From Lepidodermella squamata (lineage: Eukaryota > Animalia > Gastrotricha): DNA of 64,000 nt. Below the pieces are notes generated by a model. The model was given only the letters and a program-made list of their open reading frames with translations. It did not search any database and had not been told where the DNA came from. Position numbers and translations under genes: made by a program. Shown here in pieces: positions 1 to 6,056 of this stretch (position 1 is the first letter of the stretch; every line of letters begins with the position of its first letter). The stretch covers positions 1 to 64,000 of the forward strand of contig JBLDXI010000014.1 in assembly GCA_047495785.1 (NCBI GenBank), in the 5' to 3' direction.

Positions 1-90
1 ATCTCGTGAGAGTTCCCTATCCATATCCCCATCTCTAACCATATCTCTATCTCTATCTCTATCCCTATCTCTATCTCTATCTCTATAGCT
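1..90. repeat. Degenerate ATCTCT/ATCCCT hexamer microsatellite
   Basis: Runs of atctct/atccct; a similar run lies at 772-830. Confidence 0.85.
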
Positions 91-165
91 ATAAAATAGA
101 GCAAGGTCAAAGTCCAAGGTCGAATTCTCGCGCCTTAATGCCACGTGGCGCCAGTAGAAGGGAAA

Positions 166-198
166 AAAATGGCGGTGCTACTTCTCTGTTATAAAAGC
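166..198 (+). promoter_or_regulatory. Putative promoter upstream of the hammerhead (AAAATGGCGG YY1-like site and TATAAAAG box)
   Basis: Both motifs lie ~70-100 nt upstream of the ribozyme core; motif match only. Confidence 0.3.
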
Positions 199-251
199 AC
201 ACTAAAAACTGCATTGAAATCATTCATCCAGCTTTTATTTCTAGCAAAGAA

Positions 252-321
252 AGCAACGAAAGTCACTGATGAGCCTGCTACCCACAGGCGAAACCGGTCT
301 GACGTTTTTTCGGGTGTTGCT
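252..321 (+). ncRNA. Minimal type I hammerhead ribozyme (Penelope-like element/retrozyme type)
   Basis: GTCA-CTGATGA-GCCTG-ctaccca-CAGGC-GAAA-CCGG-TC-TGAC. Intact core, stem II GCCTG/CAGGC, palindromic minimal stem III ACCGGT, stem I GTCA/TGAC extended by AGCAAC/GTTGCT. Predicted cleavage after C299 (GUC). Confidence 0.9.
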
Positions 322-412
322 ATTTGTCATTAATGATCACTGTTTACTTTGTGTTTGCTTATTATTTTCGATTAACCACATTGAGAGCCTTGCAAAGGCT
401 GCTATTGGTATC

Positions 413-503
413 TGCTTCCCTTCAAGGGTGGCCTTTCCAGTCATGCTTCCCTATATGGGTTGCCTTTTGTAATTTGCTTCCCTATGTGGGTGGCTTTTCC
501 AAA
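413..503. repeat. 3 x 31-bp imperfect tandem repeat
   Basis: TGCTTCCCT....GGGTKGCYTTT units start at 413, 444 and 475. Confidence 0.85.
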
Positions 504-771
504 TGTTTGGTAAGCTGTAACCATCGACCTACCTACCAGAGATTTACGAGATGGTAATAAACGAATTTACAATTGTGGCTCATTGAATGAAGCCAAAAGG
601 GAAAGGATTGAACGCGTTGTTGAGACATGAGGCTTGATAAATCGAATCTTTATCACGACCTCATTTCATCCCTACATCAGAAGTGTACCCATTCAAGACG
701 GTAATTGAGTTCTTGCTAGTGAATAGCACAGTGTCATGTCAGAGGCGGTTAAAACCGTGAATTTAACCTGC

Positions 772-830
772 ACCTCTATCTCCATCTCCATCTCCATCTC
801 TATCCTATCCCTATCCCTATCCCTATCCTC
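772..830. repeat. ATCTCC/ATCCCT hexamer run (telomere-variant-like)
   Basis: CCCTAT differs from CCCTAA by one base and has the same strand polarity as the true tracts. Confidence 0.8.
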
Positions 831-930
831 GGATAGGGCTAAAGCTATTGAAATACAGGCCTGGCTCTCTAGTAGCATTAGAGCTAACTGCCGGGGTGCT
901 TAGGCTACCTGTCTGGTAATTCTCTCCTAA

Positions 931-979
931 CTAACCCTAACCCTAACCCTAACCCTAACCCTAACCCTAACCCTAACCC
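931..979. repeat. Telomeric tract (CCCTAA)~8
   Basis: Perfect CCCTAA units. Confidence 0.98.
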
Positions 980-1660
980 AGCAGTTGCCTTTTGGGTTTC
1001 CTATTGGATTAGCGTGTTCGCCTACAACTTTTGAGTTTTTCTGGCTTTTAACTTGACCATTCAGGTCGCCCAGAATTATAATTTTACCTGACTTAGTCAC
1101 CAATCTATTGTATTCCAGCTGTAAATCAGAAATAAATTTGTCCAGTAATTTCGTGTCATTCGCCGCGGGTGCATAGACTACTATGACGCTGAAGGTCTCA
1201 CGATAGATTTTTAGCCTGGCCGACATTAATCGGTCGCTAACAAAATTTATTGATGTGACTTTGATAAATTTACATTTTTTTACGTACAATCCTGTCCCAG
1301 AACGGGCCGTCGCACCGTCATCCAGGCCACAATAATAAAAAATTCCAGAACCAAGGTTGATTGAGCCTTTCCCTTTCATACGATGCTCTTGCACGGCTAC
1401 CACGTGAAAATTTGCAAATTCATCATCCATCTCCCAATTTTTGTCTTTTTCGGTTCTAATATTTAGTGTTGCCAACAAAATCAATCTAAATAATTCATAA
1501 GCTTGGTGGCTACGAAGGTTCTTTTTGTTGCGACGTCTTTTAGCAGATCGTTCGCCTACCTGTTCATCTTCATCTGATCTCTCGTCGTTTCCTGTCTTGC
1601 ATTGATCAGAAAGTGTCAACAAAGGTTCGAAACAGTTTTTAGTATCCACCGGTGTGTTGT
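980..1660 (-). pseudogene. ORF2 AP-endonuclease N-terminal part, truncated by TTAGGG repeats
   Basis: LATLNIR, VAVQEH, GTGLYV, SDRLM, VVYAP, ILGDLNGQV and VVGEH..N.KG motifs; the frame then reads VRVRVR; the C-terminal SDH motif is absent. Confidence 0.88.
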
Positions 1661-2604
1661 TGTTGTGCGTTGTAGTTCGGCGTTGGCGGCGCGTGTTCGT
1701 TTCGTCGGTTGTCGCGTGCCATGCGCGGGTTGAAAAACTTGTTTTTGTTGTTATTGTTGCGTACGGGCGGCGCACGTGGTTGCACTGGTGCCGGGCACTG
1801 GCGCCAGTAATGACCTGGAGCATTGCAATTGAAGCACGTGCCAGCACGTGCCATCTGGTTAGTATGTTGTTGTTGCTGATTCTGCTGTCTGTTGGCCTGG
1901 TTTCCGCGATTGACCTCATTTCCGCCATTGTTGTGGACATCCTCGGGGGCCTGTCGATGTTCTTGACTACCCGGGTATTGTGAGCCACGACGGTTGTTAA
2001 CGAACGGCCGATCGACGGTCGCCGCCTCTGGCTTGATCCATGCTTTCTTTCGTGAATTGTAGAAAACCTCGGTTTTTCCATCTTTCACAATTCTGTTTCC
2101 TTGGATTTTCAGTTCCGCTTTGTCTGGGCGGTTTTCGATGTAACTCTTCGCTTCGTTTCGCACTTCTCGCTGATGGAACGAATAGTAGGGTTTCGCAAAA
2201 TGAGGCTTTTCCCATCGCAAGGAGATAGCATCGAGGACCCGCTTCGCATGGGATTGCGAATGGAACGTGACTCGATAAGTGGTCTTGCCCAGACGCTCGA
2301 AAACATCGAATTCCACGTCTTCAAGCAAATCATCAAGGACGTCAAAGATCTCCTCATCGGTAGCGTTCTCTGCGAAGCCCCCAATCACCAGCGACTTGCT
2401 GGCATCCGCCAATTCCAGCTGATGAAGCCGTCGACTGTGCATCGACAGCTCCTCCTCGAGCTTCGCCTTGCTCTCGTAGAGCTTGGCCACCTCCAAAGTT
2501 AGCCGAGAGTACAGCTGGTACCGCTTTTTCCAGTCAGTTGTTGAGTCGCCCTGCTCCATTGCCATGTCCATGGCCATCAGCTCGTCGATGATAGTTGTTG
2601 CCAT
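1639..2604 (-). CDS. Retrotransposon ORF1 (coiled coil, RRM-like segment, CCHC zinc knuckle)
   Basis: CFNCNAPGHYWRQC knuckle; SLVIGGFAE...RLG...VTF pattern typical of LINE ORF1; likely start ATG 2604 (upstream in-frame ATG at 2760). Confidence 0.85.
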   Translation of the reverse strand: MATTIIDELMAMDMAMEQGDSTTDWKKRYQLYSRLTLEVAKLYESKAKLEEELSMHSRRLHQLELADASKSLVIGGFAENATDEEIFDVLDDLLEDVEFDVFERLGKTTYRVTFHSQSHAKRVLDAISLRWEKPHFAKPYYSFHQREVRNEAKSYIENRPDKAELKIQGNRIVKDGKTEVFYNSRKKAWIKPEAATVDRPFVNNRRGSQYPGSQEHRQAPEDVHNNGGNEVNRGNQANRQQNQQQQHTNQMARAGTCFNCNAPGHYWRQCPAPVQPRAPPVRNNNNKNKFFNPRMARDNRRNEHAPPTPNYNAQQQHTGGY

Positions 2605-3011
2605 GATAAATACGTATGTAAAAATCAAATTAAATACTTTGAATCCTCGGAAAATGGAAATTGCACGCCGATTCGGTCTTGGCCAACACAAATTTGCCCT
2701 CTCAGCTATCGCAGTCGAATTCGCCTTAGAATTCGAAAATCGATACGCAGATATTTTCATTCATTGTATTCATTCTTTGAATACAAATTTTGTCTGAGTT
2801 CCTTTGAGCCATTTGTCGGGAATATTTATCGGATCTCAGTATTATCGCGGAGTGGTTAGGAACACATAATTTTTGTGATGAAGAATCATCATAAACATGA
2901 AAATGATGCTCATCTTGGATCCCTATGGTGGAGTAATGGTAGGGCCCGGTTTGACTCTCAATAAAACGAGAGGCCCCGGTTTGCAGCTCGTCTGTATTAA
3001 ACTATTACCAA

Positions 3012-3120
3012 TAACCCTAACCCTAACCCTAACCCTAACCCTAGGCTACCTGTCTCTGTCTGGTATTTTCCCTAAACTAACCCTAACCCTAACCCTAACC
3101 CTAACCCTAACCCTAACCCC
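3012..3120. repeat. Two telomeric tracts (3012-3043, 3070-3120) separated by a 26-nt non-telomeric insert
   Basis: (CCCTAA)~5 + GGCTACCTGTCTCTGTCTGGTATTTT + (CCCTAA)~8. Confidence 0.97.
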
Positions 3121-3240
3121 ACCACCTCGGACAGAATATCAGGGCCCAAGCTATCAAACGCCTTTCGTACGTCAAGGAAAGCAACAGCCGCCTTCAGACT
3201 CGCGTTGCAGGCAGCTAACAGATCGTCAATTGTGGGGGCA
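3121..3240 (-). pseudogene. Short non-LTR reverse transcriptase fragment ending in TTAGGG repeats
   Basis: AAVAFLDVRKAFDSLGPDIL matches the RT D..KAFD.V motif; the frame then reads GLGLGL. Confidence 0.75.
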
Positions 3241-4727
3241 CGGTCGTGCCCTCCCGAAGAATGGAGAGAGGGTTGGGAAAGAACAGCGGCGAAAAGAGAA
3301 ATGGCCAGGGAAGAGGAAAAAAGGCACACCGTCAGCCCCCTATATAATAAGGTCTACGCAGAATAGAAGAAAATTGGCAAAAGTGTACCTACTTTGGGTG
3401 TTTATTACAAGGCCTTAGCAGAAGATATTTTCGAAAATAATTATACCAGCATGTAGCTAATATCCCCAGCTGTGTAATGGTATAATTTATTTGCAAAGAT
3501 TCTACAGGTAACTTGTTGTTTTGTGTCACCGCGCGAAGTCAATTTTTACGTGGTTCCTTAAAAAGTGTGGACCCCCCCCCCTCAGTGTGTAAACGCAAAG
3601 ACCGAGCTAGCGGTTGAGTGAGGGGACGGATTTCACACCGACGAAAAATTTAAAATTTTGGATTTATAATTAAAATATAAAAATATAAATATTTCCATAA
3701 ATTAATTTTTGTTTTGGCGCTATTTTATTCAAACTTGCAACTTGCGCGCGCGCTTCGAAACTTGCAACTCCTTGTCAACTCAGACACAGTTCCAGGTTCG
3801 TTCTTTGAGGGAACCGCTGGTTTTCCATCGAGTTTCTCGCAAACAGACATTAAACCTTACGTCATAAGAGGCAACTTTGCTTCGTATAACAACAAAATAT
3901 TCATCAATTTCGTAATAAGTCATCAAGTCCTATTTTGCATGCGACGGCATCATGGGGACCGACGAAGCCTGCACTACGGACTTTAACTTCTTCAAGAACT
4001 TACGTAATAGGTACTCACTTATGTGCATATGAATGGTTTGATAAAATTGAAATATGGAGTTTCTGTGAAGAATTATCGAAATGTGGAAGAAAGAAGTGAA
4101 ACACAGTGATGTCGCCGGTTTATCGAGGGTTGAATTCTGAACCCCTCTCAATTATTATCACATGCAAGATAGCGCAGCATAATTCCTGATGTAATTAATG
4201 TCGAATAAGCCGGGGATGTCAGGGATCATCGCTGCTTCAACGAAGGGGCGTCGTCCATCCAGGGGGTATCGCTCTCCTATCTGTTCCTTGTATCGGATAT
4301 CGGAAGGAGTTACTGTGCCTTGATATCATAGGTTGTATCCAATATCCAAATTTGTGAGAATCTTAGACCATCTTCAGACTGATTATCGTAAAAATACCTT
4401 CAACTAAGCTCGCATCACAAGCTATTAACTGGGTATATTCGAAGAAATATGGTTCATTGAGCACCAAAACCGACCCGAGAAGCAAATAATACACAACCCA
4501 GCGAGCGTGCGCAGCACGCGAGCGCTAAATTCGAGATCGCCCTCTCTGCAAAAAGTCGTTCTTCGACACTAAAAATGTAAGGTTTCGCTTGAGTTCGCAT
4601 ACCTTGATCTCGATTTGTCATGCTCAAATTCGCGACAGCGAAATTGTAACACAGACAGCTTCAAGATTAGAAGAAAATGCGGACAGCTGCAAATAGCAAG
4701 GCAACTAGCTTCATGAAACTGCATCAA

Positions 4728-6056
4728 ATTCCCTACAAAAAAGCTCCGCGTTGACTGTAGAGCCGAAGAATGAAGAGTCCCGATACCATTCTGCCACAAC
4801 TAGCAAACTGCATCAAATCCCGAGATGGCGCTTGCGCGCCATCTTTTTATCACTCGCCATTCTGAGCGGCGCTTCTCATGACACGGAGTCATTACAGTAT
4901 AAAGAAAGAAATACAAAAATAAACATGCCATGTTGATCTTTCCCTTTTTCCTTTAATTCCAAATATTCCTAAGGCACAGTAACTCCTTCCGATATTACAC
5001 TGATGGATGTTGTACTCCTTGTGGGAAGGATGATATGCATTAATCAGAGTTCAGGAGAAACCGCATGATATGTCTCATCGCATTTCAGTAAGATGTTATC
5101 GGAATTAATATGAAGAGATGATTCCGTCCCCGTTAATGTATTGTAATTGATGTTGACAATTAAGAGCCGATCAGTTTGCATTTTCCACATGCACATTTCC
5201 ACATCCTCATATTTCACTATAGCGCACGCGTGACCATAGGATTGATCCGAAAATATTAAGTAACAATATTAACCACTGAAAATGCATGATATAAATAAAG
5301 AACTTCTAATGAATTGATTTGGCGTTTGATCAATAGGTATGTATTGTGTTTGAGTAAACCTCAAGTTTCTGTTTGGAAGTTGATGTTCATGACGATCTTT
5401 GATCAATGAAGCACAACATTTCGATCTGCGGCAATGCGGCTAAGGCTAGCGCTAGCAAAATTTCAATCATTAACTAGTAAACCCTATCGACATCAGCGAC
5501 ATTGGCAAGGTTTAGCAGCTGAAGTGGCGACATATAGCTTTACCGCAGAACATCAAAAATATTGGATTACTCTCAATTCATTAATGCGTTCAGGCATTTC
5601 AGCTCATTTCAGCTCATTAACAGCTCTCATGTGCGTCTCGCTAATCACTAGCACTGGGAAATATTTACTTGAGCTGCAAATAAAACGTGATTCAGGATAT
5701 ATGCCATCGGATCATGAAGTTGTGACAATTGGTTATTACGGCTTTTGTTACAATCCGAGGAGCTGCAGTTATTTCAATTATCAGCTTGATATAATTCGGA
5801 AAAAATATAGTAGTTACAGTGTTTACTGGGCACCAGCAAACTCTTGCTTTTAGTTTCAACATCTGGCCTCATAAAAAAAGTGTAAAGGCTGACGAGGTTA
5901 ATGAACAAGAAGCGCCGCTCAGAATGGCGAGTGATAAAAAGATGGCGCGCAAGCGCCATCTCGGGATTTGATGCAGTTTGCTAGTTGTGGCAGAATGGTA
6001 TCGGGACTCTTCATTCTTCGGCTCTACAGTCAACGCGGAGCTTTTTTGTAGGGAAT
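4728..6056. repeat. 149-bp inverted repeat pair (4728-4876 / 5908-6056)
   Basis: Arms match as reverse complements by eye; each has an AGATGGCGC-4nt-GCGCCATCT hairpin. Confidence 0.92.

Follow-up and report, generated by a model that had tools for sequence, protein, structure and literature searches.

Telomere tracts and hammerhead-bearing elements layered at a contig end of the gastrotrich Lepidodermella squamata

Segments and telomere tracts at the start of contig C14

The window, by which we mean the whole 64 kb stretch of DNA that was analysed (C14:1-64000), begins at the contig start of C14, and the SKI/Sno-type and WDFY-like genes inside it point to an animal host. The preliminary description of this DNA had reported four segments joined through three CCCTAA tracts of one polarity, and both the dimer count and TRF bear this out. 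The four segments occupy the first 3.2 kb and are divided by tract 1 (931-979, 8.2 repeats), tract 2 (3012-3043, 5.3 repeats) and tract 3 (3077-3119, 7.2 repeats), all C-strand on the forward strand and 100% perfect according to TRF. Overlapping matches to the CCCTAA dimer number 14 against 0 expected, every one of them on the + strand, and the 64 kb window holds no CCCTAA tract beyond these three. The C-strand read 5' to 3' at a left contig end is the orientation that a chromosome end requires.

The outermost segment (1-934, + strand) is an element of what we call family A, in a short non-coding form; it runs off position 1, so that the 3' 58% of a 1605-bp unit is present, and it closes with a conserved 3' tail (859-941) whose 11-nt complement of the telomere G-strand lies at 931-941. 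To the right of tract 1 comes the 5' part of a LINE on the - strand (979-2762) with zf-CCHC and Exo_endo_phos matches: a patchwork 5' region (2543-2762), ORF1 with its CCHC knuckle (1639-2760) and the start of ORF2, whose AP-endonuclease domain (Exo_endo_phos) is cut at profile position 155 of 225 where tract 1 breaks it at 979. The stretch 979-2542 shares 97% identity with LINE copies on C18 and C106. Between this LINE and tract 2 stand the last 252 bp of a family C element (2763-3014, +), 96-97% identical to copies on C13, C41, C21 and C55 which directly adjoin telomere tracts; its 5' side is cut by the LINE, and other family C copies extend upstream beyond the point equivalent to 2763. Tracts 2 and 3 enclose the last 39 bp of a family B element (3042-3080, +), whose tail carries a 6-nt loop duplication (CTGTCT) and matches copies on C57, not family A. 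Finally, tract 3 breaks at 3119 a reverse transcriptase (RT) fragment from another retroelement (3120-3263, -), within which an unrelated repeat starts at about 3228 and marks the right-hand repeat boundary. A Pfam search with the 70-aa RT fragment gave no match, and its identity came from a genome protein search: an ORF on C74, itself a match to RVT_1 (E=2.3e-27), shares 76% identity with it over 34 aa. That it might belong to the same LINE as 979-2762 was rejected, the matches being at chance level.

The tails of these elements close with the 11-nt complement of the telomere G-strand, and each of the three tracts is preceded by the fixed 3' end of an element, of family A, family C and family B in turn. 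The preliminary description had seen the same motif before two tracts, and TAGGCTACCTGTCT indeed matches exactly twice in the window, at 901 and 3042; the copy at 901, however, has tail A, the subfamily of C13, C15 and C32, and the copy at 3042 has tail B, that of C57. It had noted these two tails and missed a third. The second segment is a composite, and since the family C tail (2763-3014) stands before tract 2, all three tracts, and not two, are preceded by an element tail. The idea that LINE sequence had been healed by telomere repeats holds at 979, where tract 1 cuts the endonuclease domain. This direct joining of TTAGGG repeats to a broken LINE endonuclease domain (979) and to a broken RT fragment (3119) is what telomerase healing produces; healing alone, however, leaves the element tails distal to every tract unexplained.

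It seems to us scarcely credible that the tracts are interstitial repeats left by double-strand-break repair or by telomere-targeting LINEs of the SART/TRAS kind, with no link to Penelope-like elements (PLEs) and the hammerhead motif a bystander. Interstitial tracts are common in this genome and the LINE 5' end does lie about 250 bp from tract 2, but the family C tail stands between the two, and the LINE copies on C18, C106 and C7 lie away from telomere tracts. The three tracts moreover share one polarity at a contig end, and the hammerhead, described below, varies together with the families to which the tails belong.

A non-coding element with a hammerhead motif

Ten units, tandem or inverted, stand at the right end of C32; positions 14-934 share 95% identity with them, and positions 1-13 align too, after a 25-bp deletion. 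The C32 array has a period of 1605 bp and seven complete units that are 100% identical; the units follow one another head-to-tail there, each with its hammerhead, and in the window one partial unit is visible. The short form is known from only two ends, C14 and C32, which are few for a mobile element. No open frame in the 1605-bp unit exceeds 146 aa, and the one of that length runs over a hexamer repeat, in agreement with the earlier statement that the visible element is non-coding. Comparing the short unit with a coding element on C13, we found three common parts, 34 bp of head at 91% identity, the hammerhead at 84% and the final 76 bp at 98.7%, set in interiors that are unrelated or 75-90% identical. 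After the tail there are two continuations, either telomere repeats or, without repeats, the head of the next unit. The 76-nt tail contains the 11-nt telomere complement and a GTCTGGTA hairpin. Having no coding capacity and sharing its termini with an apparently autonomous partner, the family A element of the window can be classed, on its sequence, as non-autonomous and retrozyme-like.

The + strand hammerhead that had been described in the leftmost segment lies at 253-320 (core 266-299) and is of type I. Its helix I comprises 4 bp, an internal loop and 5 bp, its helix II 5 bp, and its helix III one A-U pair closing a palindromic CCGG; cleavage is predicted between 299 and 300. This architecture matches the metazoan dimer type, the hammerheads of fungal and protist PLEs having a long helix III and acting as monomers (PMC4209133). 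Searching Rfam with the window and the full C32 unit, at the gathering threshold and at E<=10, returned no hammerhead and no other known ribozyme, probably because helix III is a single pair with a palindromic loop; weak matches to IMES-1, CRISPR-DR65, MIAT and Six3os1 fell far below thresholds and were dismissed. The minimum free energy fold of 250-318 is no better than that of shuffled sequences (z = -0.34), as expected for a motif that needs a dimer, and covariation was used instead. When 10 distinct copies drawn from families A, B and C are aligned, 97.3% of the cells are paired, compared with 24-41% when the partners are slid, and seven pairs change on both sides in a compensatory manner between the families, which upholds the earlier assignment. 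The core pattern has 112 occurrences and a control 19. In family A the motif lies 635 nt upstream of the tail, and in relatives of family C about 400 nt upstream of the telomere complement. A dimer-dependent hammerhead of this kind probably processes multimeric transcripts to unit-length, possibly circular, RNA, from which exact head-to-tail arrays would follow.

Coding relatives and their distribution at contig ends

The coding sibling on C13 is 6.2 kb long and carries an 845-aa ORF with a weak RVT_1 match. Its homologues include GIY-YIG-bearing proteins of Penelope-like layout, and alignment reveals blocks common across the whole RT, DKG and YLDD regions included. Beyond the thumb, where four other relatives run on into GIY-YIG, nothing follows in the 845-aa ORF or in the three relatives closest to it; for the C13 ORF there was no PF01541 (GIY-YIG) match at E<=1. 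Judging from the layout of the homologues and the alignment, the RT of the sibling, which is not DNA of the window itself, is of the PLE type and lacks GIY-YIG. An RT of this description, which the preliminary description had proposed to look for in linkage with the element, is therefore found in coding siblings that have the head, hammerhead and tail in common with it. The closest paralogues of the 845-aa ORF (51-100% identity) are all at contig ends. Internal initiation has been described for a PLE RT (PMC11167929).

Searching the 121 Mb genome for exact matches to the A/B motif TAGGCTACCTGTCT gave 21, one of which (C1:4600324) lacks similarity in its flanks and is put down to chance. All 20 true copies lie within about 25 kb of contig ends, those of C13, C14, C15, C32 and C57, and 19 of them have the polarity required at a chromosome end (+ at left ends, - at right ends), the sole exception being a copy in the terminal fold-back of C32. 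We also took a census of tracts of at least 3 repeats at eight contig ends, contig ends standing here for chromosome ends. All 28 tracts point as a chromosome end would require, a small set of recurrent tails stands before most of them, and in 27 the repeats begin in the GGG register, while their proximal flanks are all different, bar one duplicated block. The family A tail adjoins the telomere tract at the same end nucleotide at five independent sites, and families B and C add more junctions; at the C15 junction the join is shifted by 4 nt, a register slip that is expected if priming occurs by annealing. Truncation on the 5' side occurs at varying points, with telomere repeats as the cap. The terminal clustering, uniform polarity and variable 5' truncation expected from the first reading of this DNA are thus all found. 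Many interstitial telomere tracts occur elsewhere in the genome, outside the eight-end census.

The same data bear on two other readings of the chain. One, which we regard as very unlikely, is that the assembly of the C14 end wrongly connected repeat-rich reads from different chromosome ends through short telomere tracts. The stretch does consist of repeats at a contig end, where the unitigs of a public run, which are short and break at repeats, bridge no junction and speak neither for nor against the joins; a second run, from another organism, contained nothing of the stretch. The contig of the first run over 98-762 is the C32 variant and not that of the window, and the C32 fold-back could itself be artefactual. 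But the succession of tail, tract and unrelated broken flank recurs in one polarity at 28 tracts on eight ends, chimeric joins would ignore both polarity and the exact tail nucleotide, and the 5% divergence of the window's family A copy from the C32 copies marks a distinct locus.

The other reading is a subtelomeric satellite spread by DNA recombination only: a telomeric 3' overhang would invade the short telomere-like word at a unit boundary in an array of some other chromosome end and break-induced replication would copy the distal array, with no RNA step. Strand invasion could be seeded by the 11 nt of telomere sequence at each unit boundary, identity among the C32 units is 100%, and C13 carries in duplicate a composite block of 5741 bp, two tracts included; the literature, too, expects break-induced replication in such chains (PMC6431247). 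Yet 11 nt is very short for homologous invasion, and several unrelated families meet the tracts, each joined by its own fixed end. Repeated independent events would be needed to cut one copy to 39 bp and another to 252 bp and to re-cap them. The tail families, furthermore, have RT-coding members confined to the same ends, and where forms are otherwise unrelated, the conservation of their last 76 bp speaks for recognition by an RT more than for passive copying. We therefore judge this account unlikely.

Proposed history of the end and comparison with known systems

We consider it probable that the C14 end is a layered chromosome end, produced by TTAGGG healing and by the addition of hammerhead-bearing, endonuclease-free PLE copies through RNA-templated extension, and the interpretation given in the preliminary description is thereby supported. 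The chromosome end would have been built outwards, that is leftwards, in layers, the chain seen here being its inner part, and we infer the following order. A break within the old RT fragment would have been capped with TTAGGG repeats (tract 3); a family B element would then have been added, shortened to 39 bp and re-capped (tract 2), and a family C element added outside tract 2. This family C copy would have received a LINE at 252 bp from the 3' end, before the chromosome end was lost back into the LINE endonuclease domain and re-capped (tract 1). Finally, the family A element would have been added, within which the assembly stops. At each addition, the single-stranded TTAGGG overhang would anneal to the last 11 nt of the element RNA and prime reverse transcription by an endonuclease-free Penelope-like RT, so that an element would always join at the same nucleotide and in one orientation. 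The family A element of the window, which encodes nothing and keeps the head, hammerhead and tail of its coding sibling, would need to be copied in trans.

Some of the observations count against this RNA-templated account. The hammerhead stands 635 nt from the tail and does not adjoin it as in Terminons, where it lies immediately before the telomere complement (PMC6431247), and the published role of its fold in exposing the complement does not transfer directly. DNA-level processes are also clearly at work at these ends, as seen in the block duplication on C13 and the identical C32 units. The small number of ends with the short form and the many interstitial telomere tracts elsewhere weigh on the same side.

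Endonuclease-deficient PLEs attach to telomeres through reverse-complement telomeric repeats and carry hammerheads; they are 5'-truncated by telomeric repeats and form tandem arrays (PMC8557442, PMC6431247). The C14 end resembles the Athena elements and Terminons of bdelloid rotifers in several ways: the RT has no GIY-YIG, the host telomere repeat stands as its reverse complement at the 3' end, and a hammerhead motif is present; attachment is to G-rich overhangs in one polarity, short telomere tracts truncate the copies on their 5' side, and copies form head-to-tail arrays as well as interspersed chains in which other DNA is trapped (PMC8557442, PMC6431247). The differences are that the host repeat is TTAGGG here and of the TGTGGG type there, that the outermost element is a 1.6-kb unit without an ORF, theirs being 6-40 kb and coding, and that the hammerhead lies at the distances given above for family A and the relatives of family C. 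The non-coding form in a TTAGGG host would be a variation on the known Athena/Terminon mechanism. The Coprina elements of fungi, protists and plants also bring an endonuclease-free PLE RT to telomeres, in some hosts with TTAGGG repeats, but here the host is an animal and the hammerhead is of the metazoan dimer type, not the monomeric fungal and protist type with its long helix III (PMC4209133).

Family A resembles retrozymes in its non-coding tandem head-to-tail units and in its type I hammerhead, whose helix III is minimal and palindromic. The unit measures 1605 bp here, compared with a few hundred nt in retrozymes; these are described as dispersed or intergenic and have no telomere-complementary tail, and the apparent partner of family A is an endonuclease-free PLE. 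For animal non-LTR retrozymes, an origin from PLE terminal repeats and copying in trans, perhaps via circles, have been put forward (bioRxiv 10.64898/2026.07.22.740005; PMC4209133). In HeT-A, TART and TAHRE of Drosophila and SART and TRAS of Bombyx, one-polarity head-to-tail retroelements likewise build or occupy chromosome ends, and HeT-A, like the family A short form, lacks an RT of its own. Those are LINEs, however, that replace telomerase repeats or enter them by endonuclease, whereas at the C14 end repeats of the telomerase type take turns with elements of the PLE type, without the involvement of an endonuclease.

Endonuclease-free PLEs are the closest retroelement relatives of telomerase, and most of their records from animals come from bdelloid rotifers, whose telomere repeats are unusual. 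The C14 end extends an Athena-style grammar of attachment to an animal with canonical TTAGGG repeats, in which several families stand side by side and at least one has shed all coding capacity while keeping head, ribozyme and tail. The idea of the retrozyme is thereby extended to telomeres, the layered chain offers a readable history of break, healing and re-extension, and the 76-nt tail with its telomeric primer would provide a compact template for studying an RT's choice of RNA and its priming at a chromosome end. A further proposal, which we make tentatively and hold to be doubtful, is that family A is a protein-less 1.6-kb RNA that has split from its RT, is cut by its dimer-type hammerhead into single units and circularised, and is copied round from the telomeric overhang by an endonuclease-free PLE RT in trans. 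If this were true, a template RNA and an RT distinct from it would be dividing the labour at these chromosome ends to this day, an arrangement that would take a place between selfish retroelement and telomerase and may aid the maintenance of the ends beside telomerase.

Telomere tracts and element ends in the chain

Position 1 of the window is the first base of contig C14 (C14:1-64000, + strand) in an assembly of 121 Mb in 151 contigs, which places the chain at a contig end; the host is an animal, since genes for proteins of the SKI/Sno type and of the WDFY-like WD40-FYVE type lie deeper in the window. CCCTAA dimers occur 14 times, where none would be expected, and all 14 are on the + strand. 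TRF delimits three perfect + strand tracts at 931-979, 3012-3043 and 3077-3119 (tracts 1 to 3), so that both analyses bear out the single polarity reported in the preliminary description. C-strand repeats reading 5' to 3' on the + strand at a left contig end have the natural polarity of a chromosome end. The same description had two tracts preceded by a shared motif: this 14-nt motif has exactly two copies in the window (901 and 3042), but element tails precede all three tracts. The identities of the segments between the tracts show that at each of them an element tail lies distally, towards position 1, and unrelated broken DNA proximally.

Segment 1 (1-934, +) is the short form of a telomere-associated element, family A. 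Over 14-934 it shares 95% identity with ten copies at the C32 right end, where the family makes up a head-to-tail array (period 1605 bp); units of this array are joined without telomere repeats, and seven complete ones are identical. Positions 1-13 align once a 25-bp deletion is allowed, and the window copy therefore simply runs off the contig. Its visible part is non-coding, as first described, the longest open frame of the 1605-bp unit (146 aa) lying over a hexamer repeat. Blocks of CTCTAT/CCCTAT, one letter off the telomere C-strand repeat, flank the core at 14-86 and 774-828, and the C32 copies also have a TTAGGG-spacer-CCCTAA mini-palindrome, absent from the window's copy through a deletion. 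Three tandem repeats of about 31 bp at 412-505, each with a short palindrome (CCCT-N-GGG), recur with 83-87% identity in the 3' region of a coding element on C13.

Segment 2 contains the LINE fragment announced earlier but is composite. Its larger piece (979-2762, -) holds a LINE's 5' portion, 97% identical to copies on C18 and C106; ORF1 bears a CCHC knuckle, and in ORF2 the AP-endonuclease domain is severed by tract 1 at profile position 155 of 225. The remainder (2763-3014, +), previously overlooked, is the last 252 bp of a family C element, 96-97% identical to copies on C13, C41, C21 and C55; the C13 copies inspected extend further upstream and share its end nucleotide, where they meet a telomere tract. 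A LINE that targets telomeres is an unlikely source of the tracts, because the family C tail separates the LINE from tract 2 and the other LINE copies are non-telomeric. The LINE 5' region (2543-2762) is itself a patchwork: 2543-2626 resembles a related C7 LINE, 2626-2724 matches one single site on C20 at 99% identity, and 2724-2758 agrees at 100% with 33 bp of the rDNA intergenic spacer, a piece that recurs every ~8.46 kb on C27, C22, C17, C5 and C2 and reaches a k-mer depth in the tens of thousands in the public sequencing run X1. The rDNA unit at C27:54733-57765 shows a linked 5S-45S arrangement: its 5S rRNA gene follows the 28S 3' end at a distance of about 230 bp and lies on the opposite strand.

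Segment 3 (3042-3080, +) consists of a family B tail only, spelled as in the C57 copies and not as in family A, with a 6-nt duplication. Segment 4 starts at 3120 (-) with a short reverse transcriptase (RT) fragment, 76% identical in protein sequence to an ORF on C74 that matches RVT_1 with E=2.3e-27; comparison with the LINE of segment 2 led us to reject membership of that family. From about 3228 the fragment gives way to another dispersed repeat, directly proximal to the chain (3228-6056), with 149-bp inverted repeats at 4728-4876 and 5908-6056 and 99% identity to C15:5143918-5146756, about 70 kb from the right end of C15.

Distribution of tails and tracts in the genome

The 14-nt motif has 21 exact matches in the genome, of which 20 are real copies, the one on C1 being rejected for flanks without similarity. 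As expected for terminal elements of uniform polarity, all 20 lie within ~25 kb of the ends of C13, C14, C15, C32 and C57, on the + strand at left ends and on the - strand at right ends, with a sole exception in a terminal inverted segment of C32. Tails are followed either by a telomere tract or, without telomere repeats, by the head of the next unit. On C15 the tail junction is displaced by 4 nt, which is what an annealing-primed start in another register would give. In the C32 exception (C32:4501250-4503781) the distal end of the family A array switches to an inverted copy, and at the joint an internal site and the tail share 7 nt of microhomology (TCTGGTA). Penelope-like elements (PLEs) are described as leaving inverted copies, truncated at the 5' end, beside tandem units (PMC8557442), and the C32 copy is possibly of this kind or an assembly fold-back.

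A census of every tract of at least three repeats at eight contig ends found chromosome-end polarity in 28/28, the opposite sense occurring only in one 3-repeat tract. A small set of tails recurs in front of most of these tracts (types A and B, a variant of B, C with its variants, and one further class). The proximal flanks are all different, bar those in a 5741-bp block on C13 (within C13:20001-33000) that holds two telomere tracts and two element tails; this block is duplicated in tandem with its flanks identical, so that copying of DNA has a part in shaping these ends as well. It is possible but unlikely that the window's chain is an assembly chimera: the one public run with reads from it yields short unitigs ending at repeats, and its contig over 98-762 is the C32 variant; against this stand the identical grammar at 28 tracts on eight contig ends and the 5% divergence of the window's family A copy, which argue for a real locus. 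Far from contig ends, tracts of at least four telomere repeats are numerous in both orientations (752 overlapping matches genome-wide; for example C2:1173501, C7:2129075 and C9:2614816) and may stem from healed breaks, from fusions or from element chains that became internal.

A GTCTG(G)TA box is common to all tail classes and precedes the telomere junction by ~20 nt (905-918 and 3046-3065 in the window). It can form a small predicted hairpin, UACC/GGUA in families A and B and UACAG/CUGUA in family C, where the window and C13 copies have UGCAG for UACAG and hence one G-U pair; the 6-nt duplication of the window's family B tail lies in the loop. The box or hairpin may be the element that the RT recognises.

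The hammerhead and the coding siblings

An Rfam search returned no hammerhead, even at E<=10, and the MFE fold of the region was no better than those of shuffles. The core in segment 1 is canonical, with CUGAUGA, a helix II closed by G10.1-C11.1, and GAAA, followed by an A-U pair around a palindromic CCGG; the predicted cleavage-site C is 299. When ten distinct copies, drawn from families A, B and C, were aligned and pairs counted for the proposed structure, pairing was found in 97.3% of cells, versus 24-41% with the partners slid. Both sides change in seven pairs, four in distal helix I and three in helix II; this covariation is essentially one comparison, the A/B against the C lineage, and so one event for each pair. 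With seven pairs in agreement across two helices, it is nevertheless strong comparative support for a hammerhead structure, and together with the core it upholds the hammerhead motif first noticed here. Genome-wide, the core pattern occurs 112 times against 19 for a reversed control, in several families with differing helix II sequences. The usual metazoan type I hammerhead has a helix III of one or two pairs and a palindromic loop on it, and is thought to be active only as a dimer, for example in tandem transcripts (PMC4209133). A TATAAAAG box at 188-200 precedes the hammerhead by ~65 nt; were it a promoter, the 5' leader would be trimmed off by the ribozyme.

As the contig starts at position 1, there is no DNA to its left, and a linked RT was sought in sibling elements instead. 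On C13, a 6.2-kb element closed by the family A tail (99% identity over the last 69 bp) has a family A head, ORFs of 845 and 374 aa, and a hammerhead; a second copy there is cut at its 5' end by a telomere tract, the truncation and capping that had been proposed. The 845-aa ORF matches RVT_1 below threshold. Its database relatives at 38-48% identity are without PF01541, and those at 24-29% include proteins with C-terminal GIY-YIG domains, the layout of canonical PLEs. In an alignment the C13 protein ends just after the thumb, as do the three relatives closest to it, while four others continue into GIY-YIG, so that the PLE-type RT lacking GIY-YIG that had been anticipated is found in the C13 sibling. 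Its closest paralogues in the genome (51-100% identity) all lie at the ends of C13, C57, C9 and C20. Among them are family B copies that match along the full length at 58-61% identity, three of which have open frames of 840-944 aa, and a fourth, truncated copy at 67%.

The short and coding forms share a 34-bp head (91%), the hammerhead region (84%), the last 76 bp (98.7%), the hexamer-repeat blocks and a short repeat block, and otherwise have little in common; conserved termini around an unrelated interior are the signature of a non-autonomous element using a partner's enzyme. Spread purely at the DNA level, by break-induced replication, is the serious alternative: copying of DNA does take place, as the duplicated C13 block and the identical units on C32 show. 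Such spread leaves three things unexplained: the families, several and unrelated, have each a fixed end of their own at which they join, their members that code for RT are restricted to these contig ends too, and only the last 76 bp are kept at such identity.

A proposed route from RNA to chromosome end

Endonuclease-deficient PLEs (Athena, Coprina and Terminons) join G-rich overhangs via short reverse-complement telomeric repeats beside a hammerhead, and their copies, 5'-truncated by telomeric repeats, form head-to-tail and interspersed arrays (PMC8557442, PMC6431247). Feature by feature, except for the place of the hammerhead, the anatomy described here fits this account. The last 11 nt of the family A unit are the complement of the G-strand; the overhang would pair with them and be extended by the RT, laying down the element antisense on the G-strand with a constant start nucleotide, and erosion or breakage followed by telomerase addition would leave variable proximal junctions. 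In Athena and Terminons the hammerhead is next to the telomeric complement, whereas in family A it lies 635 nt upstream of the tail, so that cleavage cannot expose the tail. For this reason it matters that a PLE RT has been shown to begin reverse transcription at internal RNA sites (PMC11167929), so that a transcript need not physically end, 3', at the tail. The hammerhead may instead trim multimeric transcripts to unit length, and copying that starts at the tail of a multimer, or of a unit made circular, could give exact head-to-tail arrays like the seven identical units on C32.

The underlying mechanism of telomere attachment is already known. What goes beyond the literature consulted is that the host is an animal with canonical TTAGGG telomeres, that several families coexist within one chain, and that a protein-less 1.6-kb form keeps only the head, the ribozyme and the tail, with the ribozyme far from the tail.
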